Shown here one piece after another: positions 8,740 to 32,356 of a stretch of 64,000 nucleotides of DNA; the stretch's first letter is position 1; each line of letters opens with the position of its first letter. Below the pieces are notes generated by a model. It was not told the origin of the DNA. It searched no databases and worked only from the letters and a program-made list of their open reading frames with translations. A program made the translations under genes and the position numbers. The stretch lies in sequence record MN091626.1. The stretch is one strand, 5' to 3'.

Positions 8740-9033
8740 ATGAAAGCAGAAGATTTATTAAGAGACAATTTATATGAGCAATACGATTATAATAAGGATG
8801 ATAAGTTAGAAAAGGCTATAATGAAGAATTGTTATATCATTTTTGACAATGTAAATGAAGATGGAGAGAGAAATATCTATAGAATATCAGATTTGGAAGT
8901 AAATGAAAATCAAATTTTATCATTTATTTTAGTTAAAGATGATATACCTGTTTCAACTCATAGTTTTTCAATTGAAAATGTTTATGAATTTAATGAACTT
9001 GACAAGCTTATATTAGAAAGTATTAATTCTTAA
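8740..9033 (+). CDS. Hypothetical protein
   Basis: AGGAGG SD, 97 aa. Confidence 0.75.
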   Translation: MKAEDLLRDNLYEQYDYNKDDKLEKAIMKNCYIIFDNVNEDGERNIYRISDLEVNENQILSFILVKDDIPVSTHSFSIENVYEFNELDKLILESINS

Positions 9034-9100
9034 AAAATTAATTTTTTATAATAACTGATAGATATAAAATTTTAAAGCAAAAAGGAGAATTTAATTTAAC

Positions 9101-9547
9101 ATGGAAATTTTCAAATTAAAAGAATTAGAAGGTAAACAAGAACAAACAATCGAATTAACTGGTGATGATAAAAACCTTAAAGAAATTAGAGAAGCATTTT
9201 TTAACAGTCAATCAGGTACTTATATGGTAAATAAAACTATCAATGATAATATTGAAGAATTCTTCAAACATGCTGAAGATGGTGTAACTGTAGATGATGT
9301 TTATAAACTTAATGTAATTGTTGAAGATGATAAACAAATTACTTTAGTTAAAGCTGAAAAAGATGATCAATTTAAGAAAGGTTGCTTCTATATGGTATTT
9401 GACTTAATGGGTTCTGTACCTGTATATACTGATTTAGAAAATCCTGAAGCTACATTTGATTTGTCTGGTATGTTTAAAGAGGATGGTTTCGATTTCTTTA
9501 AAACTATTGCAGAAGTATTCCCTACTACTATTGAGCTTAAACAATAA
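9101..9547 (+). CDS. Hypothetical protein
   Basis: AAGGAG SD, 148 aa. Confidence 0.8.
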   Translation: MEIFKLKELEGKQEQTIELTGDDKNLKEIREAFFNSQSGTYMVNKTINDNIEEFFKHAEDGVTVDDVYKLNVIVEDDKQITLVKAEKDDQFKKGCFYMVFDLMGSVPVYTDLENPEATFDLSGMFKEDGFDFFKTIAEVFPTTIELKQ

Positions 9548-9564
9548 AGAAAGAAGCTGATACT

Positions 9565-11112
9565 ATGGTAGTATTAAACGAAACAAGAAAAATAAAAGTA
9601 TCTGTATATCCTACTCGTATATTAGTTGAAAATTACGAGTTAGGATTTTGTTCTGCAGTAGAAAATTATTTATCAGTATGGGATAAAATATATCATAAAC
9701 ATACTTATAAAGCTTTTAAGTATGATGAAGAAAATAAAACTATATCTTTTCCAGCAGGTATTAATACTAAATTATTATTACAGTCATTAAAAAATCATGG
9801 AGAAATTGATTATCAAGATTTCAGAGCAGTTGAAAATTTATTCTTTAAACCTAAACCAAATTACGATGTTGAAATGAATTTTAAACCTAGAGATCTTCTA
9901 CAAAGAAAAGCTATAGAATTCTTAAATTCATTTAGTATATATGATCCATCAACACAAAAATTCCTTTCATTACAAACTGGTGAAGGTAAAACTTTCTGTG
10001 CTTTAAAGTCAGTTATTGACAGAGAATTAGTACCTATGATTTTTGTTAATAACAATAAACTTAAAGAGCAATGGGAAGAAAAAATAAAAGAGTACACTAA
10101 TGTTGATGATGAAAAGATATATGTGATTCAAGGGAGATCAAGTATTAATAAACTATTTAAAATGAAATCTAAAGAAAGAAATAAAATAGATTTCTATATA
10201 GTAATGTATAAAACGTTAAATTCTTTTATTCAAGAAGACGAAGAAAGATTACAAGAATTACTATTAAAAACTAAAGTAGGTATTAAGATATTTGATGAAG
10301 CACATTTAGATTTTCGAAGTTTAACTAATATTGATATACAAACAGATTTACCATCAATATACCTATCAGCTACACCTAGAAGATCTGATAAATCAGAGAA
10401 TATGGTATTTAGCAATATATTCTTAAAAACACCTATATTTAGTTCTGATAATTACGACAGACAGATAGCTAATAATAGAAAAATACCATCTAAATATCAT
10501 GATGTATTTATTATCAGATGGAATAGTAATCCTAAAGAAGTTGAATTAGCTGATTTCATGAAAGCTTCTAAACGTAATGGTCTTAATGTAAATCATTATA
10601 GTAAATACTTAATTGAAGAAGATAAAAGAAGAAAAGAATACTTTGATATTGTATTTAATATTATTAATAATGTCATTATGAAAGAAGAAGTTAAAAAGAC
10701 TGTAGTTATGTTTAAATTAAAGAATATGATAGATGATTTTTATTCATATTTAGAAGATAAACTTGGACCTGAAGGATTAGAATTTTTAAATTGTATTAGA
10801 TACTATGATGGTATTGATAAAGAAGAAAAAGATAAAGTATTAGAATCTAACTTAATTATTACCACTGATTTATCTTTAGGAACTGGAATAGATATACCTG
10901 ATTTAAAAGCTGTAATTAATACAGTTCCTTTATCAAGTGAAAGTAAAGTAACTCAAATTATGGGTAGATTAAGATATATTGAAAATGAAAAATTGATGTT
11001 CTTTGATTTAATTGATCATGGGTTTAAGAAATTGGTTTCTCAAGGAAGTAATAGATTAAGAAATGTATATAAGAAAAAAGCTTTAAATATAACTGATTTT
11101 AAAATTAAATAA
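9565..11112 (+). CDS. Superfamily 2 helicase (UvsW-like)
   Basis: Walker A QTGEGKT, DEAH, SATP, TGIDIPDL, QIMGRLR. Confidence 0.9.
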   Translation: MVVLNETRKIKVSVYPTRILVENYELGFCSAVENYLSVWDKIYHKHTYKAFKYDEENKTISFPAGINTKLLLQSLKNHGEIDYQDFRAVENLFFKPKPNYDVEMNFKPRDLLQRKAIEFLNSFSIYDPSTQKFLSLQTGEGKTFCALKSVIDRELVPMIFVNNNKLKEQWEEKIKEYTNVDDEKIYVIQGRSSINKLFKMKSKERNKIDFYIVMYKTLNSFIQEDEERLQELLLKTKVGIKIFDEAHLDFRSLTNIDIQTDLPSIYLSATPRRSDKSENMVFSNIFLKTPIFSSDNYDRQIANNRKIPSKYHDVFIIRWNSNPKEVELADFMKASKRNGLNVNHYSKYLIEEDKRRKEYFDIVFNIINNVIMKEEVKKTVVMFKLKNMIDDFYSYLEDKLGPEGLEFLNCIRYYDGIDKEEKDKVLESNLIITTDLSLGTGIDIPDLKAVINTVPLSSESKVTQIMGRLRYIENEKLMFFDLIDHGFKKLVSQGSNRLRNVYKKKALNITDFKIK

Positions 11113-13181: not shown

Positions 13182-14438
13182 GTGTCAGATATTATGTTAA
13201 CAAATTTTAAAGATCATTTACACAGAGGCGGAAACCTTTCAGTTTCAATTTATACTTTATTTACTAGAAAGAATAAAAATACTGGTAATGCTATTAATGG
13301 TGAGTATATTAACACGTATCAATCAAGTCAATATAACGGTGTTCCTTTCTTAAGTGAAATTGAAAATAATGGTAATCATTATATTTCTTTCTCTTATAAC
13401 AAATTTCAACAAGGTCAAGCACCTATTCGTGAAGATGTATTAATTAGTTATCCACATTTACAAGAATTTAATAATTTCTTAAAAGCGACTTATACAAGTA
13501 TTAGTGAGAATTTTAATAATATTTTCTCTAATAATCAAGTTAATCCAGATTACCAACAACATATTTGGCAATCACCAAAATTAGTGTCTGGTAAAGAAAT
13601 TGCTATTGCTCCTGCAGTAATTCAAAATAATAGAACTAATAATTTTGAAATTGGTTTTAATATTATGGTAAATGATACTAATAAATATGATTTTGTATCA
13701 GCTAATACATTTATCAGTTTAGTTAATTTATTAGTTAGAATTACTAATGATCCATTAACATTCAGAAATCAATGTGTACAAGCTGAAATGCAAGCTAAAG
13801 AAATTGAAAATAATCAGTTATTAAAAGGGTTATTAAGAGCTCAAGGTTTACCTACAGATATGAGTAATCATCATATGGATGAAAAATCAGCTCAAGGTAA
13901 TGCTCCACGTAATAATAACTTTAATAATAACAGTGGTGGAGGTTTCAATAACAATAATCAATTCGGTAATTTCGGTGGTAATAACGGAAATTTTAACCAA
14001 GCTCCACAACAAAATAAATTTAATCAACAACAATCTAATAACCAATCTCAAGGAAATTCTTTTGGAAATTTTAATCAACCTCAACAACAACAGAATCAAC
14101 AACCGGTACAACAAAATGACAATCCTTTCAATGTGAGTCCGCAACAATCAGCACCGCAACAAAGTAATAGTAGTAATCCATTTGATGTTGGTCAAACGGA
14201 TCAAATTAGTGATGATGATTTACCATTTGAAACTAAAGAAACTCCACAACAAGATGATAGACAAATTGATAAATCTAACATGTTTAAAGATGCTGAAGTT
14301 AACAAAGAATCAGGTTCTTTAGAAGACTTATCAAATACAGTAAATAATGAAAGTGAAGGTAAAGCTAGTTCTTTACTAGACGACTTCATTAAAAAAGGTA
14401 AAGAATCAGAACAAGAAGATGACGATTTAGGAATTTAA
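13182..14438 (+). CDS. Putative ssDNA-binding-like protein with Q/N-rich linker
   Basis: Globular N-terminus, long Q/N/G/F low-complexity tract, internal NPF..QISDDDLPF, acidic end DDDLGI. Confidence 0.5.
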   Translation: MSDIMLTNFKDHLHRGGNLSVSIYTLFTRKNKNTGNAINGEYINTYQSSQYNGVPFLSEIENNGNHYISFSYNKFQQGQAPIREDVLISYPHLQEFNNFLKATYTSISENFNNIFSNNQVNPDYQQHIWQSPKLVSGKEIAIAPAVIQNNRTNNFEIGFNIMVNDTNKYDFVSANTFISLVNLLVRITNDPLTFRNQCVQAEMQAKEIENNQLLKGLLRAQGLPTDMSNHHMDEKSAQGNAPRNNNFNNNSGGGFNNNNQFGNFGGNNGNFNQAPQQNKFNQQQSNNQSQGNSFGNFNQPQQQQNQQPVQQNDNPFNVSPQQSAPQQSNSSNPFDVGQTDQISDDDLPFETKETPQQDDRQIDKSNMFKDAEVNKESGSLEDLSNTVNNESEGKASSLLDDFIKKGKESEQEDDDLGI

Positions 14439-15374: not shown

Positions 15375-15381
15375 AATATAT

Positions 15382-15411
15382 CCCCTAACCTTAAATTAAT
15401 AAGGTTAGGGG
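15382..15411. terminator. Bidirectional terminator, CCCTAACC family
   Basis: CCCCTAACCTTA-AATTAA-TAAGGTTAGGGG between convergent genes. Confidence 0.75.
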
Positions 15412-15429
15412 AATTTATATCATTTTTTT

Positions 15430-17100
15430 TTATTCTGTTGTAGTTTCTTCTGGAGTTTCTTCTACTTGTGAAGTAGAAATAGTAACACTAACATCTTTAC
15501 TTACACTATCAGAAGTGACTTTAACTTTAGCAGTTCCTACAGCTTTAGCAGTTACAAGACCACTGTTGTTAACTGAAACAAATTCAGATCCTTCTGTAAT
15601 AGAATAGTTTACAGGGTTTCCTTCAGGATCTGTAGTTACTGTTAATTGTTGAGTTTCATTATCTTTCATATCAACACTATCAGGAGTAACTGTTAGACTT
15701 TTAGTCTTTACTCTAGTTACATTAACATTAACCGTCTTACTAATAGAATCAGAACTTACTTTAACTTTAGCAGTTCCTACAGCTTTAGCAGTTACAAGTC
15801 CACTACTATTAACTGAAGCATACTCAGATCCTTCAGTAATAGAGTAACTTACAGAGTTTGTAGATGGTTGAATTTTAACGTCTAACTGTTGAGTTGATTC
15901 TGCATCTATGTTAACTTCTTCTGGAGTAACAGTTAGACTCTTAGTCTTTAAACGGCTTACATTAACCTCTACATTTTTAGAAACATCATCTGATTTAACT
16001 GTAACGTTTGCAGTTCCTTCAGAAATACCAGTAATATTTCCGTTATTATCAACTGAAGTAAATTCAGAACCGTCTTTTAATTCAAAGCTTACTTTTCTTC
16101 CTTCTGGTTCAGTAGTAACCTCTAATTTCTGAGTTTGTTCTGCTTCAATATTAACTGTCTCTGGAGTAACAGTTATACTTTTAGTTTGATTAATGCTTTC
16201 AAATTTTCCATCTTTAGGATCATAAACAGAATATTCAATTTTCTTATCAATTTCGTTTTGTATAGTTTCCTCATCTAAAATGCGGATATTGAAATTAACA
16301 ATATTGTCTTGAATACTTCTCTCAATTACTTTAACTAAAATTTCACCAGTCTTACTAAAGAATAATAAACGATTTTTATCTGCTTGATATCTAGCATAAC
16401 TTTCATCACTAACATTTACAGATAATAATTGTAATAGATTTTCTTTAGCTACAGGAGTGACTTCTTTAGTATCGAAATCTTTATAACCTAAGATTTTATC
16501 TAAAGGTAAAGCAGATTCTTTAAGAACGTTAATATCTTGTTGCAATTGAACAAGACGACCTGTAAATTTACCGTATTCTTTAACTTTAATAAAGACTGAA
16601 TCTTTAACACGTTCAAAGATGTTTTTATGTCCTTCAGAAATAGCAATGTCGTAATTTTCTGAAGCGTCTTTAGGGAAGTATAATTTAAGTTCATATTCTT
16701 CATTAACTTCTAAATCAGAAGTAGGTAAACTTAAAATTTCAGATTTAACATCTTTAGCAGTATAAGTTTTAACTACAGACTTATCTGAAAGTTTGATTAA
16801 GTCAAATTTTAATAATCCTAATACATCACGAGCATCTACAGGATTAATATAGAAAGGTACATTAATAAACTTACCAGTTTCTCCTTCAGATTTGAAGTAA
16901 ACTGTTCTTCTATCATATTTAATTTTACCAGTTTCAGGAAGAGGTTGAACATCAGTAACAGTCCAACCAGCTTGTTTTAAGCTAGCTAGATCATTACTAG
17001 AAAGAATAACGTTTTCACGAGGTCCACGTTCACCTAATCCTAAAAATGGAATTAATTTTTCATCTAATAATTTTACTTTAAAGTAGTTAGTAGTAGCCAT
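15430..17100 (-). CDS. Virion protein with three C-terminal Ig-like (Big_2-type) domains
   Basis: Three ~80-aa repeats SLTVTP...SV..SGLVTAKAVGTAKVKV. Confidence 0.8.
   Translation of the reverse strand: MATTNYFKVKLLDEKLIPFLGLGERGPRENVILSSNDLASLKQAGWTVTDVQPLPETGKIKYDRRTVYFKSEGETGKFINVPFYINPVDARDVLGLLKFDLIKLSDKSVVKTYTAKDVKSEILSLPTSDLEVNEEYELKLYFPKDASENYDIAISEGHKNIFERVKDSVFIKVKEYGKFTGRLVQLQQDINVLKESALPLDKILGYKDFDTKEVTPVAKENLLQLLSVNVSDESYARYQADKNRLLFFSKTGEILVKVIERSIQDNIVNFNIRILDEETIQNEIDKKIEYSVYDPKDGKFESINQTKSITVTPETVNIEAEQTQKLEVTTEPEGRKVSFELKDGSEFTSVDNNGNITGISEGTANVTVKSDDVSKNVEVNVSRLKTKSLTVTPEEVNIDAESTQQLDVKIQPSTNSVSYSITEGSEYASVNSSGLVTAKAVGTAKVKVSSDSISKTVNVNVTRVKTKSLTVTPDSVDMKDNETQQLTVTTDPEGNPVNYSITEGSEFVSVNNSGLVTAKAVGTAKVKVTSDSVSKDVSVTISTSQVEETPEETTTE
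15465..16190 (-). repeat. Three tandem Ig-domain repeats (approximate bounds)
   Basis: DNA-level repeats such as TTTAACTTTAGCAGTTCCTACAGCTTTAGCAGTTACAAG at about 15520 and 15760. Confidence 0.85.
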
Positions 17101-17123
17101 TCTTAGAATTCACTTTCCTTTCT

Positions 17124-17672
17124 TTATTTTTCTAATAGTAAATCAATTAAATCTTGTTTACGAGCATTTTTATTATACTCAATTTCTTTAGAATCTAATT
17201 CTTCTTTAAGCTCAGCTACAGTGAATTCATTTAAATCTTCTTCTGTAACTTCGACTTCTTCAGAACCTTGTTCTTCTACTTTTTCTTCGTTAGTAGGAGC
17301 TTCTTCAGAACTTTGTTCTTCTTTAGTTTCTTCTTTTACTTCGTCTGATACTTCGCTATCTGTTCCTTCATCCACTTGCTTCTCTTCGCTGCTGCTTTCA
17401 TCATTGCTCTGTTCCTCTTGTGATTGCGTATCATTTGATTCAGAAACTGCTTCATTTTTATCTTCACTCTTATTTTCTTTTTTATTTGATTTATCGCTTG
17501 GATATACATAGTCTTCATCAACAATTGTTACTTGTAAACCTAAACGTCTAAATAAACGAATTTGTGAACCTGAAGCACGGAAAGGTTTAACAAAAGGACC
17601 TTTACCTTTACCAGGCACAAATGCTTTTTCATTAATAATAATGAAATTATTATCTTCATTGAAATTTAACAT
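17124..17672 (-). CDS. Protein with N-terminal shared module, acidic linker and C-terminal HeH/SAP/Rho-N-like domain
   Basis: C-terminal LNEFTVAELKEELDSKEIEYNKNARKQDLIDLL. Confidence 0.65.
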   Translation of the reverse strand: MLNFNEDNNFIIINEKAFVPGKGKGPFVKPFRASGSQIRLFRRLGLQVTIVDEDYVYPSDKSNKKENKSEDKNEAVSESNDTQSQEEQSNDESSSEEKQVDEGTDSEVSDEVKEETKEEQSSEEAPTNEEKVEEQGSEEVEVTEEDLNEFTVAELKEELDSKEIEYNKNARKQDLIDLLLEK

Positions 17673-17744
17673 AAATTAGTAATCTCCTTTACCATATTTT
17701 ATTTTATAAATAAAAGTTAAGGAAGGATCTTATAAAAATCCTTC

Positions 17745-18542
17745 TTAACTAAATGTTCCCCATGCGTTACCAATACGTTGTCCTTTACCATTTGATTTAC
17801 CAATTGGCACGTATACATATTGTCCTTTAAATTTACCTGAAACCCAGATAAGACCATCAAAGTCTTGGATTTCTTCGTATTTAATAGAGTCGCCTTTTTT
17901 CATGAATGGACCTGTAGGCCATCCAGTCCATGGACCATTTTTACGAGTAATAATTCCTGAAGCAACATTACATTTGAAAGTAGCTTTTTCAGTTTTCCAT
18001 AGAATACCTGCTGAATTACGTTTCCATTTAGCAGATGTAACAGCTTTCTTAGGAGCTGCTTTCTTAACTACTTTTTTCTTAGGAGCTGCTTTCTTAGTAG
18101 TTGCTTTTTTAGTAGCTGTACTACTAAAGGCTGGACGAATTACTCCCCAAAATCCTGTATAATCATGGAATACTTTAGCTGCAGGTGAACCATTGCTACC
18201 TGCGTTAAACCAGTTCTGGTCAATTGAATAGAAATTGTTTAAGTTAGCTGAAGTGATAATACCTGTATGACCATAAACATCATATGGAGGATTAGCCCAA
18301 ATAGCTATATCTCCTGGTTGAGGTAAGAATGATGGAGTATTTTTAATAAGTTTCCATCCTGAAGGCATTGTATTACTTTTAAGATCTTTAGCGTTACCCC
18401 AAGGCCAGAATTTTCCATCAGTTAAATAATTACAATAACCGATAGTCAAATCCATACATTGAGCTCCATAAGCTCCATCCATGTCAAGTCTACGACCAAT
18501 ACGATTATTAACCCAATTCAAAGCTTGAGTTTTAGTTTTCAT
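17745..18542 (-). CDS. CHAP-domain peptidoglycan hydrolase with SH3b domain
   Basis: DGAYGAQCMDL, PQPGDIAIW, YGHTGI, SIDQNW; C-terminal SH3_5-like domain. Confidence 0.9.
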   Translation of the reverse strand: MKTKTQALNWVNNRIGRRLDMDGAYGAQCMDLTIGYCNYLTDGKFWPWGNAKDLKSNTMPSGWKLIKNTPSFLPQPGDIAIWANPPYDVYGHTGIITSANLNNFYSIDQNWFNAGSNGSPAAKVFHDYTGFWGVIRPAFSSTATKKATTKKAAPKKKVVKKAAPKKAVTSAKWKRNSAGILWKTEKATFKCNVASGIITRKNGPWTGWPTGPFMKKGDSIKYEEIQDFDGLIWVSGKFKGQYVYVPIGKSNGKGQRIGNAWGTFS

Positions 18543-18584
18543 ATTTTATTCAAACCCTTTCGATAAATTTTCTTTATTTCTTTA

Positions 18585-18596
18585 TATTTAGTTGTT
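18585..18596 (-). promoter_or_regulatory. Putative late promoter AACA-N6-TA
   Basis: AACA-ACTAAA-TA on minus strand upstream of CHAP gene. Confidence 0.65.
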
Positions 18597-18637
18597 CTTT
18601 TATAAAAATAATATGTTTCATAATAGTATAAAAATAA

Positions 18638-18674
18638 ATACCCTAACGAATCTTTAATATGATCGTTAGGGTAT
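18638..18674 (-). terminator. Terminator-like hairpin after amidase
   Basis: ATACCCTAACGA/TCGTTAGGGTAT stem. Confidence 0.6.
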
Positions 18675-18707
18675 ATAAAATTATAATTTAAATTATAGAA
18701 TCATTTA

Positions 18708-19658
18708 TTAGCTAAATGTTCCCCATGCTGGACCAATACGTTTACCGTTACCATTTGATTTACCTACTGGTACGTATACATATTGTCCCTTAAATTTACC
18801 TGAAACCCAAATATATCCGTTAAAATCTTGGATTTCATCATATTTAATAGTATCACCTTTAGACATACGAGGACCTTGAGGCCATCCAGTCCATGGACCA
18901 TTTTTACGAGTAATAATTCCTACAGATACACCACATTTGAAAGTAGCTTTTTCAGTTTTCCATAGAATACCTGCTGAATTACGTTTCCAAGTAGTTGAAG
19001 TTTCAGTACTTGTTTTCTTAGGTTTAGCAGGTGCTTTAGTTGTAGTAGTAGATTTAGTTGCTGTTGAAGTTTTAGCTGTAGAAGTAGCACCATTTTTCAT
19101 ATAAGTTAGAACCTTTTTATCTACATTAGAAACACTACGAGACATACCGCATGCAGCTAATAAATTGCCTGGATCTTGTTTGTCTGCTTGGATATCTTGA
19201 TGTCCTGGCATATTTGTACTTGCATTAATTTTATATTCTTTACATAAGAAAGCAAGAACACGACAATAGTTATCAAATGATTTTAATGAACGACTTCTAT
19301 TAGAGAAGTAACATCCTTCAACACCAATAGCGCCATCATTAGCATCAATACCATACCAAGAATTATCAGTAGGTGTATTGTACATAACATGCCATGCTTT
19401 TTCATCTAAAGGAACACAGATAATACATTCTTTATCATCAACAAAGATATGAGCTGATGCTGTATAGTTCCAATCAATATTATATGAATTACGATAGTAA
19501 TCAACATTATTTTGGGCAGTAGTGTTAGGGTTTCCTGTGTCATGAGCAACAATAAATTTAGGTCCGTTAAGCTTATCTCCAGCTCTACGAGTACCTATTG
19601 GTAAAAAATCAGTATAAACAGGAACACCGTTCCATGTACCGATATGTTTTTTAGCCAT
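18708..19658 (-). CDS. N-acetylmuramoyl-L-alanine amidase (Amidase_2) with SH3b domain
   Basis: IVAHDTGN, SAHIFVD, AWH, IGVE, GHQDI..DKQDPG; SH3b nearly identical to CHAP gene. Confidence 0.9.
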   Translation of the reverse strand: MAKKHIGTWNGVPVYTDFLPIGTRRAGDKLNGPKFIVAHDTGNPNTTAQNNVDYYRNSYNIDWNYTASAHIFVDDKECIICVPLDEKAWHVMYNTPTDNSWYGIDANDGAIGVEGCYFSNRSRSLKSFDNYCRVLAFLCKEYKINASTNMPGHQDIQADKQDPGNLLAACGMSRSVSNVDKKVLTYMKNGATSTAKTSTATKSTTTTKAPAKPKKTSTETSTTWKRNSAGILWKTEKATFKCGVSVGIITRKNGPWTGWPQGPRMSKGDTIKYDEIQDFNGYIWVSGKFKGQYVYVPVGKSNGNGKRIGPAWGTFS

Positions 19659-19705
19659 AATTAAATTTTCCTCCTTGAATTTATTACTAATTAAAGTAAT
19701 TTCTA

Positions 19706-19717
19706 TATTTAACTGTT
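19706..19717 (-). promoter_or_regulatory. Putative late promoter AACA-N6-TA
   Basis: AACA-GTTAAA-TA upstream of amidase. Confidence 0.65.
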
Positions 19718-19725
19718 CTATATTT

Positions 19726-22065
19726 TTAATACTTGATTTCTGTAGATACGATTAATTTATTTTGATATCTTCCACCTCTAGTGTAAACTTTACTATCAGT
19801 GTCACCTATATTAATACTATTTTCAGATCCATAAGCTATACATTCATCTAAGAATAAATTACCTCCTGATGAAGCTTGGAAGTCTTTTCCTTGATAACTT
19901 TCAAATGCGATACATCCTAAATTCCACGATTGTGTACCTTCATTTACATCAGCTACATTACCTCCATCATTTCTTCCATATATACCATTTATTCTAATGA
20001 TTTTTAAACCTTCATGAGTAGTTGATCCGTTATTTGATTTAACACCATTCAATCCTTTATCGGTTCCATTATCCATTCCTATACAATTAATCTCTATTAT
20101 ATTAGGTTTAGAACCATCAGCACCAATATGGTAATTTAAACCGTCAAAACTATTATAATTACCTTTACAGCTATCAAGAATAATATCTTTACCGCCAACA
20201 ATAGCAAGACCATTGTAACTTGAAGCAGAATGATAAAAATTACATTTCTTAAAGAATGTACTGTTATTTGAAGTTAAATTTAATTCAATGCAGTTTCTCC
20301 CGCCATATATATTTAAATTTTCAAAATATATATTTGAAGCTAAACTTGTTAACTGTATATTCGAAGAAGATATTAAAGGTATTACATTACTATTTGAAGG
20401 TTTATTATCATTAATATTGGAATAAACTTTAGTACCGTCAGTAAACCATGAATTAGGTGTACTTTCAACTTCATCAATACTACTTACTTTCTTTATATCA
20501 ATACTATTATCTAGCGTTACAACTTTATCGGTAGCAGATCTACTAAATTCATAAGTTCTATTTTTACCAGAAGTTAGTGTCCATGAAGGTTCATCAGCCA
20601 TAATAATATTCACATTATTACCTGTGCCTATTATATTAATGCTCTTATTAAATGCTTTTGTAATTAATGTGCCGCCAATTCTAAAATAGTTACCATCAGC
20701 AACCATAATTGTATCATTATCATTAACTTTAGGTATTACTACTTTAAAAGATTTAAATGGGTTTTCTTTAGATAAACCATCATTAGAATCATTACCATTA
20801 ACAGCATCTAAGTAGTAAGTAGTTCCGCCTGATAATCTATTAGTAGTTATATCATATTTCACTCCAAAAGTACCTTTTCCATCAGTAACAATTCTATTTT
20901 TTAATATTTCATTACCATAATTGAAATCATTAGGTTTTCTAACTGTTATTGGAAGGGTAGGTGCATAATTACCATCAAGACCGGGTAAACCTTGTAGACC
21001 TTGAGTTCCAATCTTACCTGTATCACCTTTTAATCCATTTAACTGTTCTTCAGTAAAATCAGAATACTCGAAAGGATCTCCCTTTTCACCTTTTAATAGA
21101 TCTAATTGTTCTTGAGTAAAATCGGAATATTCAAAAGGGCCACCTTTTTCACCTTTTAACTCGGATAATTGTTCTTGAGTAAAATCAGAATACTCGAAAG
21201 GATCTCCTTTTAATCCATTTAACTGTTCTTCAGTAAAATCAGAGTATTTGAAGGGGTCGCCTTTAGGACCTTGTATACCTGGATCACCTTTATACATCTC
21301 AGCATTTTCTACCATGTAATTCTTAAGATTTTCTTTGTAATCTAATAATTTATTTTCAAAATCATCTATTTTACTGTTAAATGAATCTTGTGCTAATTTT
21401 AATTCTTCAGATTTATCTTTTATAAGATTTAATTTTTCTTCAACTTTAACTACATCATTTTCCATATTCTTAACATAGTTTGTAGTCTCACTAAGTTTTT
21501 CCATTTCATCATTAAGACTCATTGTATTGTTATAATTACTATTGAATTGTTCTCTTACAGTTTCAAAATCAGTTAAAGTATCTTTCATGCTACTTAATTT
21601 ATTATTCATATCTTCTATTGTTGAAATTACATCTTCTTTTTCAGATTGTAAATCTAATTTTTTATCTTCAATACTATATTTAAAACTATCTAGCTCACTC
21701 AAATATGAATTAAGATTATCATCATCAATTAAATTTTCTTTGATTAAGTTAAGTTTTTCTCCTGCTTTTTCATTAATATTATTTATATCAGTAGATATTA
21801 TTTTTATTTGTTTAAAAGCCTCATTCACTTGAAGATATTTCTGTTTTATAAAATCTTCAATAGAGAAATAATCAGCTACGTCATATTCTCCATCTGAATT
21901 TAAATCAACATATTCATTTTTATTTACCTTTACATATTGAATATTCATTAAATCATAATAATCTAATGTATTTCTATCAACATAATAAGGTTTATTTATA
22001 GGTCCCATACCTTTACCTGGAATATAAGTTTTTTGAGGAACTATAATTAGTATACTATCTTCCAT
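19726..22065 (-). CDS. Putative fibre/appendage protein: shared N-module, coiled coil, collagen-like repeats, pectin-lyase-like beta-helix
   Basis: KGDPFxYSDFTxEQL repeats; YYLDAVNGNDSNDGLS..PFKS..DTIMVADGNY typical start of parallel beta-helix domains. Confidence 0.7.
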   Translation of the reverse strand: MEDSILIIVPQKTYIPGKGMGPINKPYYVDRNTLDYYDLMNIQYVKVNKNEYVDLNSDGEYDVADYFSIEDFIKQKYLQVNEAFKQIKIISTDINNINEKAGEKLNLIKENLIDDDNLNSYLSELDSFKYSIEDKKLDLQSEKEDVISTIEDMNNKLSSMKDTLTDFETVREQFNSNYNNTMSLNDEMEKLSETTNYVKNMENDVVKVEEKLNLIKDKSEELKLAQDSFNSKIDDFENKLLDYKENLKNYMVENAEMYKGDPGIQGPKGDPFKYSDFTEEQLNGLKGDPFEYSDFTQEQLSELKGEKGGPFEYSDFTQEQLDLLKGEKGDPFEYSDFTEEQLNGLKGDTGKIGTQGLQGLPGLDGNYAPTLPITVRKPNDFNYGNEILKNRIVTDGKGTFGVKYDITTNRLSGGTTYYLDAVNGNDSNDGLSKENPFKSFKVVIPKVNDNDTIMVADGNYFRIGGTLITKAFNKSINIIGTGNNVNIIMADEPSWTLTSGKNRTYEFSRSATDKVVTLDNSIDIKKVSSIDEVESTPNSWFTDGTKVYSNINDNKPSNSNVIPLISSSNIQLTSLASNIYFENLNIYGGRNCIELNLTSNNSTFFKKCNFYHSASSYNGLAIVGGKDIILDSCKGNYNSFDGLNYHIGADGSKPNIIEINCIGMDNGTDKGLNGVKSNNGSTTHEGLKIIRINGIYGRNDGGNVADVNEGTQSWNLGCIAFESYQGKDFQASSGGNLFLDECIAYGSENSINIGDTDSKVYTRGGRYQNKLIVSTEIKY
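21020..21270 (-). repeat. Four KGDPFxYSDFTxEQLxxL repeats (approximate bounds)
   Basis: Repeated AGTAAAATCAGAATACTCGAAAGGATCTCC-like units. Confidence 0.85.
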
Positions 22066-22244: not shown

Positions 22245-24170
22245 TTAACCATTAATAATTTTAAAAATATTTTCGTTTAATAAATCTCTTTCTAATCTAC
22301 TTTCTTCAGAAAGTTTTTCCATTAATTCTTCTTCTGTATATTTATCAAAAGATACAGAATTATATCCATTAATAGAAATAGAAGATTCATTAACTTGAAT
22401 TGATTTATTTACATTTAGATCATTAATGCTTTCTTCTAAGAATTTTTTAAGACGTGTTTCATCTCTATTAGGTACATTTTCATAGGCTTCAAACACTATA
22501 TCTTCATAGTATTCTTCTAATGATTCTTCAAAACCTTCATAAAGTGAATCATCTTTATTTTTTAATTGGAAATTAATATCTTCTTCTAGCAATTCTAAAT
22601 TAACTTCTTCAGATAATCTTTCTTTAACATCTTCGTTAACTTCATCTAAAGGATTAAGATAGTTTTCTAATAAACCTGATTCTGATTCATTATTAACACG
22701 TTGAATTGTATTTATATTGAATTCTTTTTCTAAGTTTTCTAAAGTTATTTCATTATCTGTATAAAATTCTTTAAGAACTTTATTTACTTTAGGTTCAACT
22801 ACAATAACTTTCTTAAATCCTAAACCGAAATCAACTTTATCAACTAATAATGAAGAAGGATTATATACTTTAGGAACTTCATCCATATAAGATTCTTTAC
22901 TAATAACGATATCAACACGTTTACCTAAAGATTCAGATAAAGCATTTGTATATCTAATTAAGTCTTTAATTGTGTAAGTTTCATTAACTTCTTCTTCATT
23001 AATAACTTTAGTTTTAAATTCAATATCAGTAGATCCACAATTTTCACATACTAATTCATCTTCATTAACGTTAGGATCAACTGTTTCTTGAACTCCACAT
23101 TCGTTACAAATTACTTCTCCAACTTCTTTAGAAGTTTTTAAAGCTTCTTCAAGTTCTCCATTACAATTTTCACATACTAATTCATTTGATTCATTCATTG
23201 TTAGATTACTTCCACAATTTTCACAAACAGCTTTTCCATTTTCAATTTTACCAGTTTCACTTAAAATACGTCTAACAGTTTCAATTGATTCATTAGTAAC
23301 GAAAATTTGTTTTTCATTTTCGTTTTCTAATTTAAATGTATTTAATAGAGTTTCATGAATTTTTTCTGCATGATTTTTAAATGATTTAACTACAGCGAAA
23401 TCAGAATCCTCTCTCATATATACGTATGGGAAAGCTTGATTATTTTTATCATCAACATAATTTTCATTAGCAATTATATTTTGTTTTTCAGTATTAACTT
23501 CTTTAGATTCTGGAGTACCTATAGCATATCCTACTTCAGCAGGTGTGTCTAATATTCCATTTTTTAAATCTACAAAAGTAAATTCAGGAACTGGATCTTT
23601 ATCGTATAAATAAGTTTCAGTAACTGCTCCTCCAACACTTGGAGAACCATTTGCAGCAGACAAACCTCCATCACTAACAGAACTTGCATTGGTATTTGCA
23701 TTAGAAGTACTTACTGAATAAGTCGCATGTGGACCAAAAGTAGTAGGAACCATCATTTGAGAATCTAAGAATTTAGCTCTTAATTCAGAATATCTTGGTT
23801 GTTTCTTATCTTCATCATCGTCTTCTTTTTCATCTTCGAATAAATAATCTTCTTCAACAGAAATTTCAGGATCTGAATTAGCTACATCAGTAATGATAAC
23901 TTCATCTTTATCAGCCACGATTGGTTGATCGTAATCAGGGTGATCCGAATCAATTACTTGAACATCATCTTCATCTTCAGCATCTTCAATTTCATCAAGA
24001 TCATCAGATTCCTCATCATCAATTTCTTCTTCATCTTCATTAATTATTTCGTTAAACATTTCTTCTAATTCTTCATCATCTTCAGGAATATCACGTTTTA
24101 ATTCTTCATTTTCATCATCATTTAAATCATCTTCAAATAATAACATATCATTTTTATTTTCTTCAGACAT
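22245..24170 (-). CDS. Highly acidic zinc-ribbon protein, possible prohead core/scaffold
   Basis: D/E-rich N-terminus; CENCG..CENCN and CNECG..CENCG; many L/V-x-E motifs. Confidence 0.55.
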   Translation of the reverse strand: MSEENKNDMLLFEDDLNDDENEELKRDIPEDDEELEEMFNEIINEDEEEIDDEESDDLDEIEDAEDEDDVQVIDSDHPDYDQPIVADKDEVIITDVANSDPEISVEEDYLFEDEKEDDDEDKKQPRYSELRAKFLDSQMMVPTTFGPHATYSVSTSNANTNASSVSDGGLSAANGSPSVGGAVTETYLYDKDPVPEFTFVDLKNGILDTPAEVGYAIGTPESKEVNTEKQNIIANENYVDDKNNQAFPYVYMREDSDFAVVKSFKNHAEKIHETLLNTFKLENENEKQIFVTNESIETVRRILSETGKIENGKAVCENCGSNLTMNESNELVCENCNGELEEALKTSKEVGEVICNECGVQETVDPNVNEDELVCENCGSTDIEFKTKVINEEEVNETYTIKDLIRYTNALSESLGKRVDIVISKESYMDEVPKVYNPSSLLVDKVDFGLGFKKVIVVEPKVNKVLKEFYTDNEITLENLEKEFNINTIQRVNNESESGLLENYLNPLDEVNEDVKERLSEEVNLELLEEDINFQLKNKDDSLYEGFEESLEEYYEDIVFEAYENVPNRDETRLKKFLEESINDLNVNKSIQVNESSISINGYNSVSFDKYTEEELMEKLSEESRLERDLLNENIFKIING

Positions 24171-24190: not shown

Positions 24191-25459
24191 TTATTTTCTA
24201 AAAGTTCCTTCAATACTATCTTTAATAATAAATAATATACACGGAAGTAATACATAATCTTCCATATTCATATCATATTTATCATCATAGTAATTAAACA
24301 CTTTACTTAATATTTTTTCTTCTATCTTTTCATCATTCATATACATTGAGATTAATTTATATCTATCATCAAAGTAAGTTAAACTTTTAGTGCCTTGATA
24401 GTCTTCATTAACTTCATTAATCTTAGTTAAATTACTCAATTCTATAAAATCGTTTAATCCATCTAATACTTCAGTGTCTTCTATACTTTTATGAACGAAG
24501 CTTATTTCTTTATACTTCTCTCTAAACATTTTTAAGAAATTATCCTTAGTGTCATTAAGAGTAATAACATTAGGTAAAGTCTTTTTATCCTTTAATTTTT
24601 CATATAGAGAGAATTTATAGTTCTTTTGATTTATTCTTTCATTCTTAGGATTTTTATCTTTATAAGGTAGTATATTAGAAAGATAAGTACTAGATTTTAC
24701 TAATAGATTATTGTCATAAATAAATCTGGATAAATTCAAATCAATATATTTAGTTGATGCAACTGCACTAAATTCATCTTCATAGTAAATAAAAGTATTT
24801 AATGAAGAATTATAGAAATGATCAATAAATATTTGTGAAAATTCATCAGCATATTTAATACTATGATTGACTTGATAGAAATCTTCTTCTAGTATCAATG
24901 ATTTATTATCTGTTCCAATATTGGAAAATACTGTTCTATATACGTTTGATACCTGATTTTCAATATCTTCTGTATTAACATTAAAATTCTGATATTGTAT
25001 TTTATAGTAAGCTGAGTTCTCTAGTGAACTCATTTCTACATTAGTTACACGATATATTCTACTAGTTGCATTTTCTTTAGACTGATATTGAAATACAATA
25101 AAATCATCTGGTAAAGGTTCAATAGTGCCTGGTAGTATAACTGCTTCAGATTCTAAATCTTTTTCAGTTCCCCATTCTTCATCCCATTCAATTGTAGGAT
25201 TCATTTCAGCTACATTATACAAAGGGAAGTCTTTTAATTTATTATATTTCAAAGGAGAATTATCTCCAATAATTTCTTCAACATTATCTAGTGAACGATC
25301 AGAAGTAGATTTCTCATGATCTTTACTATAGTATGTAACAAAACTAGGAGCACCTGCTTGAAACTTACTATATTTTTCTGTACCGGATAAATATGAGGAT
25401 ACGTAACTATTTACAATATCTTTTGGTTGTAATTCATCATTTGATATAAATGTACCCAT
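24191..25459 (-). CDS. Putative virion structural protein
   Basis: 422 aa, late promoter upstream, structural neighbourhood. Confidence 0.6.
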   Translation of the reverse strand: MGTFISNDELQPKDIVNSYVSSYLSGTEKYSKFQAGAPSFVTYYSKDHEKSTSDRSLDNVEEIIGDNSPLKYNKLKDFPLYNVAEMNPTIEWDEEWGTEKDLESEAVILPGTIEPLPDDFIVFQYQSKENATSRIYRVTNVEMSSLENSAYYKIQYQNFNVNTEDIENQVSNVYRTVFSNIGTDNKSLILEEDFYQVNHSIKYADEFSQIFIDHFYNSSLNTFIYYEDEFSAVASTKYIDLNLSRFIYDNNLLVKSSTYLSNILPYKDKNPKNERINQKNYKFSLYEKLKDKKTLPNVITLNDTKDNFLKMFREKYKEISFVHKSIEDTEVLDGLNDFIELSNLTKINEVNEDYQGTKSLTYFDDRYKLISMYMNDEKIEEKILSKVFNYYDDKYDMNMEDYVLLPCILFIIKDSIEGTFRK

Positions 25460-26802: not shown

Positions 26803-27970
26803 TTATAGCATATCTTTTACTTTACGTTTTAATTCTATTAAAGCTTTATTAGTGAAAAGCATTAAATAAATATCAGTAGTCATACGAGATACGATACTTA
26901 ATGGAGAGAATATAGCTTCAATTTCCTCGTCAGGTCTATATTCTGCATAAGGAGATTCATTAGGAGGAGTAACATCAGCAATAACTGTTTTACATGCTCC
27001 ATAGAAACTGATCTTATCACCAATACTCATATCATCTTCATACTCTGTGAAGATTTCAATAAGTACTCCATCTACTTTCTCACCTTTAATTTTCTCACTA
27101 TTAATTTTCTCTACAGCTGGAATATCTACATCTAATCCAGGTAATGTAGATTTATTATCTTTAACTGCATTTTTGTATTCTCTATATTTACTTTTAGATT
27201 TATTAATATAACTATTAACTAATTTAGCTAATGTAGGAGACATATTTTCAATATCATCATTATAATAGATATTTACTTTTTTAATTTCTCCAGTATATTT
27301 AGATCTAACAGCTCTATTAGAAATATCTTGTATTTCTTGTTCAAATTCAGAACCGATTTTATCTAATAAAGAACCAATACCTTCATCATCAAATGAATTC
27401 TCAAATATCATTAATGGATCTCCTGTACGTACATTTTGACCTTCTTTAACAATATATTGAATATTTGTATTAGAAGCTAAATTAACTGTTTTCTTCATAG
27501 TAACTTTAGTTGACATTGCTTCAGACATACTGTTAGAAATAATAGAACTATCTTCGTACGTGCCATAGCTTGAAGCAACTGCAACTTTAGATAATTTACC
27601 AGCAGCAAATTGAATATCATTATTACTGCCAGATCCTGCAAAGTAACTATCATTTTTAGCTAATACTTGTCCTTTATTAAATTTCTTACCTACTTCAAAT
27701 TGTGGAGTAAGTTTATTATTTTGATAGAAACCACCATTGGAGTTCTTAGCAAGTTTTTCAGATATATCAATTACATCTTTATCCCCATTAATGTATTCAA
27801 CAAGCATTAATCCTGTTTTCTCATTGATAGAAGTTACTTTACCATCTTCTTTAGCTTTAAAAGCAAAAGTATCTGAAATTTGATAGGCTAAAGCTTTATC
27901 TACACCAGATCCAACTAAAGGACGGTCATTTGTTTTAGTTGCTATCAGGTGTTTTGCCTGAGTACCGGTC
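26803..27970 (-). CDS. RNA polymerase beta subunit (probably virion RNAP), exon 2
   Basis: TGTQAKHL, YEDS, IGDKISFYGACKTVI, FSPLSIVSRMT; frame opens well upstream of the tracked ORF start 27807. Confidence 0.88.
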
Positions 27971-29270
27971 CGATATCTTCAACAGAGATCGTAAATCTCT
28001 GCCAGTTCTCTTATGAACTTCTTTAAGATTTCCTTAAAGTCTAGACTATATCTTCACCCTATATTTTTATAGGGGATCACTATTTCGATTTAAGGGATTT
28101 TCACCCACTCCATTAACTTGAGCCCTACTCCTGTTGGTATATTTCAATACCCTAAGGGATAGTCGTTGAGCTTTTTCCTAGACAATTTTCGATTTTTTCT
28201 TTTATTTTTCCTTCTTTTTGATCTTTATAATTTATTCTTATCAGATCTAATTTTTCATGATTTTTGAAATAATCATCTTTTATTTTATCATTCTGTTTTA
28301 AGGTTTCGAATTTTTCTTTACCATTTTTATATCTAAAAGGTATAAAGTGCTGCTCACCGTCAAATTCTATACAAAGATTATATTCTTCTAAAAAGAAATC
28401 AACTCTTAAATGATTTCCTTTTATACTGAAAAGATCATCAAATTTCTTTTCTTTTTCATAAGGTATTTTCATATTATCCAAATATTCAGATATTTCTTTA
28501 GTACCTTTTGAATTACTAATATCACTACAATGAGGACAGCGATGTCCTGATGAATAAAAACTTTCCCAATTCATCTTAAATTCTCTTCCGCATTCTTCAT
28601 GTAAGATATCCATTTTAGTTCTACTATTAGAATATGAATTTGAGACTAATTCATAATCAAATTTTTCTATATAATCTTTTACTTCTTTAAGGTTTTTCCT
28701 TTTATTAGGTGCACAATGAGGACAACCATAACCCTGCTGAAGATTACTGTATGTTGATTTGAACTCATTCCCACATAAAGAATGAAATATTAATAATTTC
28801 TTTTTACTGTTTTCATATTCACTCTTTAAAATATAAACATCCTTACCATGTAAGTCATTTAATTTTTCTTGTACAACTTCATTATCAACTACTCTTCCTG
28901 CACACTTAGGACATTTATAACCTTTAATAAAATTTGATGGTGCTACATCATATACATAATTACATTTTTTATGTTTTAGTTTTAATTTATTTTTGTATAA
29001 TTCGAAATCCTTTATGAAAATATATTCATCATAATGTTTTAATCTCTCTTTACATTTCTTATGGTATTCTTCTTGTTTATTCAATTATTTCCAACCTTTC
29101 TTACGAAAAGCTTGTCTAGGAACTTAGTTGCTGATCATCCAATCTTAATGATTTTTAAGCATATCACGCTTACTGTTACCAGTTACGTTGTAGCTCATTA
29201 AGCTCTAAGGACTTCCCAGCAATTAAATGATTTTATTACATATACATTACTGTATAAGGGGACAAAATTT
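27971..29270 (-). mobile_element. Group I intron in RNAP beta gene (1300 nt)
   Basis: P1 GGGAU/GUCCC with U.G; P, Q, R GCTCAACGACTA, S AAGATATAGTCT; terminal G27971; splice yields HADSPRIGMTGTQAKH. Confidence 0.92.
28152..29084 (-). CDS. Intron-encoded homing endonuclease, three zinc-ribbon repeats plus Vsr-like (EDxHD-type) nuclease
   Basis: H..C...C.CP.C repeats; RVDFF..IEFDGEQH..NDKIK; ORF end overlaps intron R element. Confidence 0.8.
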   Translation of the reverse strand: MNKQEEYHKKCKERLKHYDEYIFIKDFELYKNKLKLKHKKCNYVYDVAPSNFIKGYKCPKCAGRVVDNEVVQEKLNDLHGKDVYILKSEYENSKKKLLIFHSLCGNEFKSTYSNLQQGYGCPHCAPNKRKNLKEVKDYIEKFDYELVSNSYSNSRTKMDILHEECGREFKMNWESFYSSGHRCPHCSDISNSKGTKEISEYLDNMKIPYEKEKKFDDLFSIKGNHLRVDFFLEEYNLCIEFDGEQHFIPFRYKNGKEKFETLKQNDKIKDDYFKNHEKLDLIRINYKDQKEGKIKEKIENCLGKSSTTIP

Positions 29271-32200: not shown

Positions 32201-32356
32201 ACTATTTAAGAAATCAGTAAATGAATTTTCTTTAAAACCTTTATAAATAACTAACTGGTCTTTTTTCTTATCTTTGATTTCTTCATCAATAGCTTTAATT
32301 TTATATCCAGATATTGAATAGAATTTAAGATTTTTTAATCTATTAAGATATTTCAA
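29271..32356 (-). CDS. RNA polymerase beta subunit (probably virion RNAP), exon 1; spliced product 1417 aa
   Basis: YMKLNGGKKV, YRVRGPE, FKGPAG, STPDSNKVGIVRQL, HADSPR; size like phiKZ gp178. Confidence 0.88.

Follow-up and report, generated by a model that had tools for sequence, protein, structure and literature searches.

Three neighbouring late proteins of the Staphylococcus jumbo phage PALS_2 (MN091626.1, 268.7 kb), namely an immunoglobulin-like (Ig) protein (gene A, gp237), an HeH protein (gene B, gp238) and a fibre protein (gene E, gp241), start with a homologous N-terminal module of about 46 residues. This homology is confirmed by the present analysis, and the module is most likely a virion-proximal attachment domain from which each cargo projects. 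The genes lie in a stretch of 64,000 nucleotides (the window, to which all positions refer unless another record is named) that is 100% identical to PALS_2 and 84-96% identical to the Staphylococcus jumbo phages S6, DC4, Madawaska, MarsHill, LY01, AH12, SA1, PB50 and Machias. PALS_2 and these phages are AR9/PBS1/BpSp-like and encode their own multisubunit RNA polymerases. A, B and E are genuine open reading frames (ORFs) of the minus strand, each preceded by a Shine-Dalgarno-like sequence. The three genes and their modules, the latter supported in part by AlphaFold2 (AF2) models and their predicted local distance difference test (pLDDT) scores, are as follows.

15430-17100, minus strand: gene A (gp237), Ig protein of 556 residues, annotated as Ig-like and ortholog of S6 ORF90
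17124-17672, minus strand: gene B (gp238), HeH protein of 182 residues, consisting of the module, an acidic disordered linker and a C-terminal HeH domain
19726-22065, minus strand: gene E (gp241), fibre protein of 779 residues, consisting of the module, a long helix, collagen-like repeats and a putative β-helix
17511-17648, minus strand: canonical N-terminal module of B, residues 9-54 (AF2, pLDDT ~90)
21922-22053, minus strand: canonical N-terminal module of E, residues 5-48 (profile match, AF2)
16936-17085, minus strand: diverged module copy in A, residues 6-55 (hhalign 93-94%, structural match of the B model)

The modules of B and E are the closest pair, as the original prediction had it. 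In the six reading frames of the window the strict motif P-x-K-G-x-G-P occurs in B and E only, and a looser form, [IVL]P..G.G..GP, in A only. An HeH-type profile made from B, BpSp gp225 and one metagenomic ortholog, with E not included, picks up the N-terminus of E with an E-value of 1.1e-7 among the 615 ORFs of the window (all HMMER filters off) and of 2.4e-7 in the whole PALS_2 record, while A is reached only by profile-profile comparison. Alignment searches give exactly two module sites per genome in five Staphylococcus jumbo genomes. The columns of Gly23, Gly25, Pro26 and Pro30 of the B module are invariant and that of Pro20 is nearly so; the invariant turn P-x-x-G-x-G-P-x3-P is present in B and E and is not found in A. 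The signature K-x-x-[IV]-P-x-x-G-x-G-P, which had been put forward for all three proteins, is thus exact in B and E, but the hairpin loop of A is three residues longer than the canonical one and keeps only IP...GP, its GxG not being conserved among A orthologs. Isolated modules have no match in Pfam at E<=10, the module profile has none among the PDB sequences and the B module has no usable match in the ESM Atlas.

The relationship of A to the module is more distant. Among the window ORFs, A is not found by a plain hidden Markov model (HMM) of the module even with the HMMER filters off, and an early hhalign comparison restricted to Staphylococcus sequences gave P=0.054, a weak value from few sequences. 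A later Staphylococcus-only comparison gave P=2.9e-4, a score that was reached in one of 300 column shuffles, and a shallow module profile of eight rows gave P=0.013. The link became clear once bridging sequences were included, and it is significant only with deeper profiles on both sides. These bridges are A-type homologs in two metagenomic jumbo-phage contigs (labelled L027 and L026), where they directly follow the HeH gene (L027 8531-9457, E=1e-27 over 270 residues; L026 8856-9716, E=5e-8 over the N-terminus). Their hairpin loops, IPGLAGVRGP and IPFIEKQGP, are intermediate between the canonical IPGxGxGP and the IPFLGLGERGP of A. With the bridging orthologs added, hhalign aligns residues 6-55 of A with the whole module over 47 columns (94.2% probability, P=1.2e-7), and none of 400 column shuffles attains the score (34.9 versus a shuffle maximum of 20.8). 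A second run against 33 HeH-type proteins, a profile that holds neither A nor E, gave 93.4% and P=2.4e-7, while control N-termini from seven other gene families of the same phages gave P values of 0.013-0.62.

Could the resemblance of the three N-termini be a product of chance or composition, with no common origin? The failure of the plain HMM to find A and the first hhalign value obtained with few sequences would fit this, but we find it hardly credible. It is already refuted for B and E by their match at E=1e-7, and for A it is contradicted by P ~2e-7 with the deeper profiles, by the shuffles and by the clean negative controls, so that the expected significant alignment of all three N-termini is borne out. 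Furthermore, the module is always located at the extreme N-terminus, the genes are adjacent, and the structural match described below covers the same residue range of 7x30_P.

In the AF2 model of B (pLDDT ~90) strands 9-19 and 23-33 form a hairpin that is followed by helix 35-43 and strand 48-51. The model of the E module (pLDDT 70-89) has the same strand-strand-helix-strand order and then a small hairpin. The short helix anticipated downstream of the motif corresponds to helix 35-43 of B, with the same element order in E. The module is probably a self-folding domain, in which a short helix and then a third strand come after a β-hairpin whose turn is rich in Gly and Pro. The VIA fold search with the B model covered 48,161 PDB representatives; nearly all of the best 50 matches, which are those considered here, are to its HeH domain. 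The module is aligned in only two of the 50, chain P of PDB entry 7x30 and the mitoribosomal large-subunit chain 9i05_Ae, both with Z 3.5. In the former, model residues 3-53 superpose on chain residues 3-53 with a root-mean-square deviation of 2.5 Å for 48 residues. As 7x30_P is the S6 ortholog of A, the partner and the residue range hit by this match are precisely those predicted. Foldseek gave no match of the B model in the PDB at E<=0.001, and in a fold search with residues 1-120 of the E model the long helix accounts for all of the best 50 matches, which is uninformative on the module.

The ribosomal match invites another explanation, in which the module is a nucleic-acid-binding domain akin to the N-terminal domain of bL9 and its spread over three proteins reflects RNA or DNA binding. 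Apart from 9i05_Ae, Foldseek lists the chloroplast ribosome large-subunit chains 5mmi_H and 6eri_AH (TM score 0.58-0.60 by target length), and we take all three chains to be bL9. The bL9 N-terminal domain is of similarly small size, has a similar β-β-α-β order and carries a Lys/Gly-rich loop, so that a weak fold-level resemblance exists among the few structural matches. These structural scores are, however, in the range of common small folds, and the Pfam model Ribosomal_L9_N (PF01281), which matches 11 of 14 control genomes, has no match in any of four phage genomes (E<=10); the isolated modules likewise lack any Pfam match. Nor is there an evident need for such a domain in a fibre or in a protein that decorates the capsid, and the homologous region of S6 belongs to a capsid-bound protein. 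We regard a bL9-like function as very improbable.

The S6 structure also identifies A. A phmmer search of the PDB sequences matches A to 'Hoc-like protein ORF90' of S6 (7x30_P) at E=6e-302, the two being near-identical over residues 1-448. By this sequence identity A is a known capsid decoration protein, because its ortholog ORF90 sits in the S6 capsid structure; the location on the capsid is experimentally established for the S6 protein. The entry ('Capsid structure of Staphylococcus jumbo bacteriophage S6') has ORF90 in four chains and the gp23-like major capsid protein ORF12 in 27, and the stoichiometry would be about one ORF90 per hexamer. In 7x30_P 301 of the 476 residues of ORF90 are modelled. 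These are presumably residues 1-301, the N-terminal non-Ig region, since the aligned range is 3-53 and the Ig domains start at about residue 305. ORF90 and A share this N-terminal region and the same kind of Big_2 domains, and differ in the number of the latter, two in S6 (476 residues) versus three in PALS_2 (556 residues). The corresponding parts of A are given below.

16198-17100, minus strand: N-terminal region of A, residues 1-301, presumed counterpart of the ordered part of ORF90 (7x30_P)
15466-16188, minus strand: Ig-like part of A, residues ~305-545, with three Big_2 domains (three Pfam stretches, E=4e-31)

The N-terminal 300 residues of the Hoc-like orthologs are 56-99% identical while the number of Big_2 domains varies. 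We count none in metagenomic relatives of 335-368 residues (P0045), two in S6, three in PALS_2, AH12 and SA1, and four in LY01, Machias, Madawaska and PB50. Neither a word search nor a search of the phage collection found relatives of the N-terminal 300 residues outside Staphylococcus-type jumbo phages, and the PHROG 'Hoc-like head decoration' matches A weakly and in the Ig part only. The GenBank record of DC4 (MZ779063.1) lacks the coding sequence of the Ig protein and has a tRNA-Phe annotated within its reading frame (2601-2694); its locus tags are therefore shifted relative to the table in the DC4 paper, where UFVDC4_00059 is an Ig protein of 556 residues (PMC10638138).

The cargo of B consists of two parts.

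17256-17489, minus strand: acidic, predicted disordered linker of B, residues 62-139 (pLDDT ~40)
17130-17243, minus strand: HeH/SAP-like three-helix domain of B, residues 144-181 (Pfam HeH, VIA)

Both the length and the sequence of the linker vary among orthologs. The C-terminus scores 32.3 bits against Pfam HeH (cut-off 28.9), and in the VIA search the HeH domain resembles the C-terminus of T4 endonuclease VII (Z 6.3), the N-terminal domain of Rho (Z 6.0) and a SAP domain (Z 5.0). B matches PHROG 23231, of unknown function, over nearly its full length (E=9e-11); its only match among the PDB sequences is a marginal one to an unrelated prophage protein. BpSp gp225, AR9 g163 and the PBS1 ortholog have the same module-linker-HeH architecture, with synteny shared by the former two, and these orthologs, like PHROG 23231, are unannotated hypothetical proteins. 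A third viral protein in BFVD (G4KK69, 201 residues) matches the whole B model (Foldseek, E=2e-4), and the architecture may therefore extend beyond phages of Firmicutes.

Behind its module, E is composed of the following segments.

21316-21861, minus strand: long helix of E, residues ~69-250 (AF2; weak Tropomyosin match over 131-250)
20968-21315, minus strand: collagen-like G-X-Y runs and 21-residue 'PFEYSDFTEEQL' repeats of E (translation)
19729-20958, minus strand: C-terminal cargo of E, residues 370-779 (PHROG 32409, PHROG 16653)

The modelled helix begins at residue 69, continues as far as the AF2 model is confident and is probably a coiled-coil stalk. The repeats are visible in the DNA as 3.0 copies of a 63-nt period at 21023-21211. 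Residues 370-779 match PHROG 32409 'tail fiber protein' at E=2e-148, and the C-terminal part matches PHROG 16653 'hydrolase' at E=1e-49; no Pfam match over the C-terminal part and no PDB sequence match was found. This cargo is probably a β-helix enzyme or receptor-binding domain, and a pectin-lyase-like domain has been described for the fibre in the DC4 paper (PMC10638138). The name 'tail fiber' is an annotation label only. Among E orthologs, residues 1 to about 330 are kept at 54-72% identity and the C-terminus is swapped: LY01, AH12, SA1 and Machias have, in place of the β-helix, a short stalk with three or four small genes behind it. The idea that the module-proximal part is conserved while the cargo is exchanged is therefore well illustrated by these four phages. 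The small genes that follow the short fibres probably encode separate distal or receptor-binding fibre parts. In Machias (L011) they lie at 8926-10705, with equivalent positions in the records L008, L009 and L010, and the botulinum NTNHA fold is mentioned in the Machias record as an HHpred match of gp158.

How far the module extends beyond these phages was surveyed in 1.84 billion representative proteins using a profile of B, E and one metagenomic ortholog (E<=0.001). Profile searches of genome and databases, suggested with the original prediction as a check, thus yielded E in the PALS_2 record and 34 matches in this survey. One of the 34 (P0032) is a spurious repeat protein, and in the other 33 the match begins no later than residue 13. 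Judged from their sequences, about 28 of the 34 have the architecture of B, with a module, an acidic linker and an HeH-like region within 100-200 residues. Pfam recognises HeH in ten of 33 scanned members; HeH, SAP, Rho_N or EndoVII-dimerisation domains are found in some only. Five matches are long fibre-type proteins, including the 1139-residue fibre of Madawaska and a metagenomic protein of 845 residues that combines collagen-like repeats with a GDSL esterase. The fibre cargoes found behind the module are hence a β-helix, a GDSL esterase, or a short stalk with separate small genes. To judge from these searches, the module is rare, has no Pfam family and is previously undescribed.

The HeH-type protein is present in AR9 (g163), PBS1, BpSp (gp225) and Listeria phage LPJP1. 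A single module is found in each of the AR9 and BpSp genomes and two in that of LPJP1, the second being a canonical copy on gp108, a Big_2 array of 953 residues whose gene comes immediately downstream of the HeH gene (E=5e-8 with a profile lacking gp108). Canonical modules therefore carry three cargo classes, as the HeH protein, the fibre and the LPJP1 Ig array are all headed by canonical copies. Several lineages have an Ig or Hoc-like protein encoded right behind the HeH gene. In every context examined (BpSp, AR9, LPJP1, the contigs L004 and L026, and a 306-kb contig) the HeH gene is the last of a cassette whose first member is an H_T_join_2 gene, with one or two further genes in between. The products of these middle genes are very acidic wherever the sequence was read (BpSp, AR9, LPJP1 and L026). 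In PALS_2 the first two cassette genes are located upstream of E.

24191-25459, minus strand: Phage_H_T_join_2 protein, first cassette gene and candidate docking partner (Pfam PF24214, E=2e-12)
22245-24170, minus strand: very acidic protein of 641 residues with zinc-ribbon-like motifs, middle gene of the cassette (translation)

The H_T_join_2 protein gives only spurious repeat matches among the PDB sequences; its AR9 ortholog, g165, is annotated 'virion protein'. The acidic protein is annotated 'Rad50 ATPase' in PALS_2 and SA1. It is poly-acidic with zinc-ribbon-like CxxC pairs, and the label looks wrong because no ATPase domain match is found in Pfam or the PHROGs.

This distribution points to a likely history. 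The small protein with module, acidic linker and HeH domain, which is present as a single copy at the end of the cassette in AR9, PBS1 and BpSp, would be the ancestral bearer of the module. Tandem duplicates on either side of the HeH gene would then have acquired other cargoes, the downstream ones giving rise to the Hoc-like and Ig proteins (with a canonical module in LPJP1 gp108 and a diverged one in the Staphylococcus phages) and the upstream one to the fibre. Both fibres and Ig arrays would be later fusions.

Several points suggest that the module is an attachment domain: it is invariably N-terminal, it is conserved relative to the cargo, its exposed Gly/Pro turn is invariant, and module proteins were detected in DC4 virions, where liquid chromatography-mass spectrometry (LC-MS) gave one peptide each for the A and E orthologs in a preparation that also held GroEL and UvsX (PMC10638138). 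Docking is established for the Ig protein only, in S6, and there for the whole N-terminal region of about 300 residues. We infer that the module itself makes the virion contact and that the HeH protein and the fibre attach by it, be it to the capsid lattice or to the neck. For the canonical module the site may be the lattice, by analogy with the Ig protein, or the neck or another non-icosahedral site, by synteny. Of the common anchor with interchangeable cargoes that was originally envisaged, the part that holds is that one homologous module heads HeH proteins, fibres and Big_2 arrays; virion docking is established for S6 ORF90 alone. The functions of the cargoes (adhesion, polysaccharide degradation, nucleic-acid binding) are putative and deduced from their domain families. 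Several observations weigh against a role in attachment. B is not among the proteins of the DC4 virion LC-MS (PMC10638138), a thin data set of 26 peptides, and the acidic linker of B is poor in tryptic sites. AR9 g163, the B ortholog, carries no virion-protein annotation. The S6 capsid model, as deposited, consists of major capsid protein plus ORF90 only, with neither B nor E, and their lattice binding, if any, is therefore not at high, icosahedrally ordered occupancy. The structural match of the module is weak in absolute terms (Z 3.5). Given that the ordered region of A comprises about 300 residues, a 46-residue module may be a minor part of the capsid contact, and the loss in A of the P..G.GP...P turn that is invariant in B and E could mean a different partner.

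Attachment can be pictured in more than one way. The capsid could be a natural modular display surface, where the anchor fold that holds the Hoc-like Ig protein on hexamers also fixes a collagen-like fibre with a polysaccharide-degrading β-helix, which would make this a head fibre and no tail fibre, and, at lower or variable occupancy, the HeH protein, cargo being exchanged by recombination behind a 46-residue plug. In this extended form we find the proposal rather doubtful. A real, if minority, possibility is that the canonical module of B and E anchors to a non-icosahedral site in the neck or collar, perhaps to the H_T_join_2 protein, and that only the diverged copy of A binds the lattice. 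In that case the fibre would be a whisker or a collar fibre, comparable with T4 fibritin beside gene 13. Several features would suit a neck site: in six lineages an H_T_join_2 gene and the gene of an acidic protein invariably precede the HeH gene, AR9 g165 bears the annotation 'virion protein', the icosahedral capsid model lacks B and E, canonical and A-type copies have different hairpin turns, and the coiled-coil and collagen architecture of E is trimer-like. The contact itself, however, is argued from gene order, adjacency is a weak predictor of binding, and the canonical module of LPJP1 bears a long Ig array, an architecture typical of capsid decoration. It is also conceivable, but unlikely, that B is no structural protein but an assembly or packaging accessory that transiently bridges DNA, through its HeH domain, and proheads or capsids, through the module, as proposed for lambda gpFI; the fibre and the Ig protein would then employ this capsid-recognising domain again, to attach permanently. 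No report places B in virions, its gene stands among head-completion-like genes, and HeH and SAP are DNA-binding folds, in line with which the HeH domain resembles the C-terminus of endonuclease VII and the N-terminal domain of Rho (Z 6.0-6.3). Against an accessory role, DNA would be repelled by the long acidic linker, neither a packaging phenotype nor an interaction is known, and the proteomic data are too thin to exclude B from the virion.

The remaining features of the region include two endolysin genes, which separate B from E and do not belong to the module family, and a hairpin downstream of A.

17745-18542, minus strand: endolysin with CHAP and SH3_5 domains, between B and E (Pfam)
18708-19658, minus strand: endolysin with Amidase_2 and SH3_5 domains, between B and E (Pfam)
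15381-15412: bidirectional terminator-like hairpin at the end of the B-A transcription unit (13-bp stem, T run on both strands)

B and A are separated by an intergenic gap of 23 nt. RNA sequencing of SA1 places both lysin genes and the acidic-protein gene in the late cluster, and A, B and E are not listed (PMC9414953). Further away, on the minus strand, the RNA polymerase β-subunit gene of PALS_2 is split into two pieces (29198-32356, 1052 residues, and 26803-27807, 334 residues), between which sits an HNH homing-endonuclease ORF (28152-29084). The β subunit of DC4 is a single ORF of 1417 residues (PMC10638138), and the split in PALS_2 looks like an intron or other mobile insertion. On the plus strand, 13182-14438 encodes a 418-residue protein with a long Gln/Asn-rich low-complexity middle, an ortholog of AR9 g161, which has no match in Pfam or the PDB. 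In the DC4 virion LC-MS (PMC10638138) its ortholog, assigned by size and position, is second to the major capsid protein with six peptide-spectrum matches.

Ig-bearing capsid decorations and tail-fibre anchors with exchangeable distal parts are already familiar. T4 Hoc and T5 pb10 resemble A in that a small capsid-binding domain presents an Ig domain or an array of them. T5 pb10 is reported to keep picomolar affinity with other cargo fused to it (PMC10766600), and such fusions are the engineered counterpart of what seems natural in the module proteins of PALS_2. The capsid-binding domain of T4 Hoc is C-terminal (PMC10385173), whereas the module of A is N-terminal. There is no sequence relation between A and either protein. 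We know of no fibres or HeH proteins that share the T4 or T5 decoration anchor. The P22-type head-binding domain and the N-terminus of T4 fibritin are alike in combining a conserved virion-proximal N-terminus with an exchangeable distal part, and E, like T4 wac, lies near a head-tail-joining-like gene; no sequence or fold match between these anchors and the module was found. To our knowledge, they have not been described as also heading capsid decoration and small HeH proteins. A literature search, the scope of which did not extend to the S6 capsid paper, found no statement that the N-terminal 50 residues of ORF90 recur in HeH or fibre neighbours.

What is new is that a capsid decoration protein of known structure, a fibre bearing an enzyme and a small HeH protein widespread in AR9/PBS1-like jumbo phages are all headed by one small undescribed domain. 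The module hypothesis can be checked quickly because a cryo-electron microscopy structure with a homologous domain exists. If the module is the contact element, it would be a new, compact natural display handle of about 46 residues for jumbo phages of Staphylococcus, Bacillus and Listeria. It would also give a first hint at the function of the conserved HeH protein, a protein that is hypothetical in every genome, and would raise the question whether the 'tail fiber' gp241 sits on the head or on the neck.

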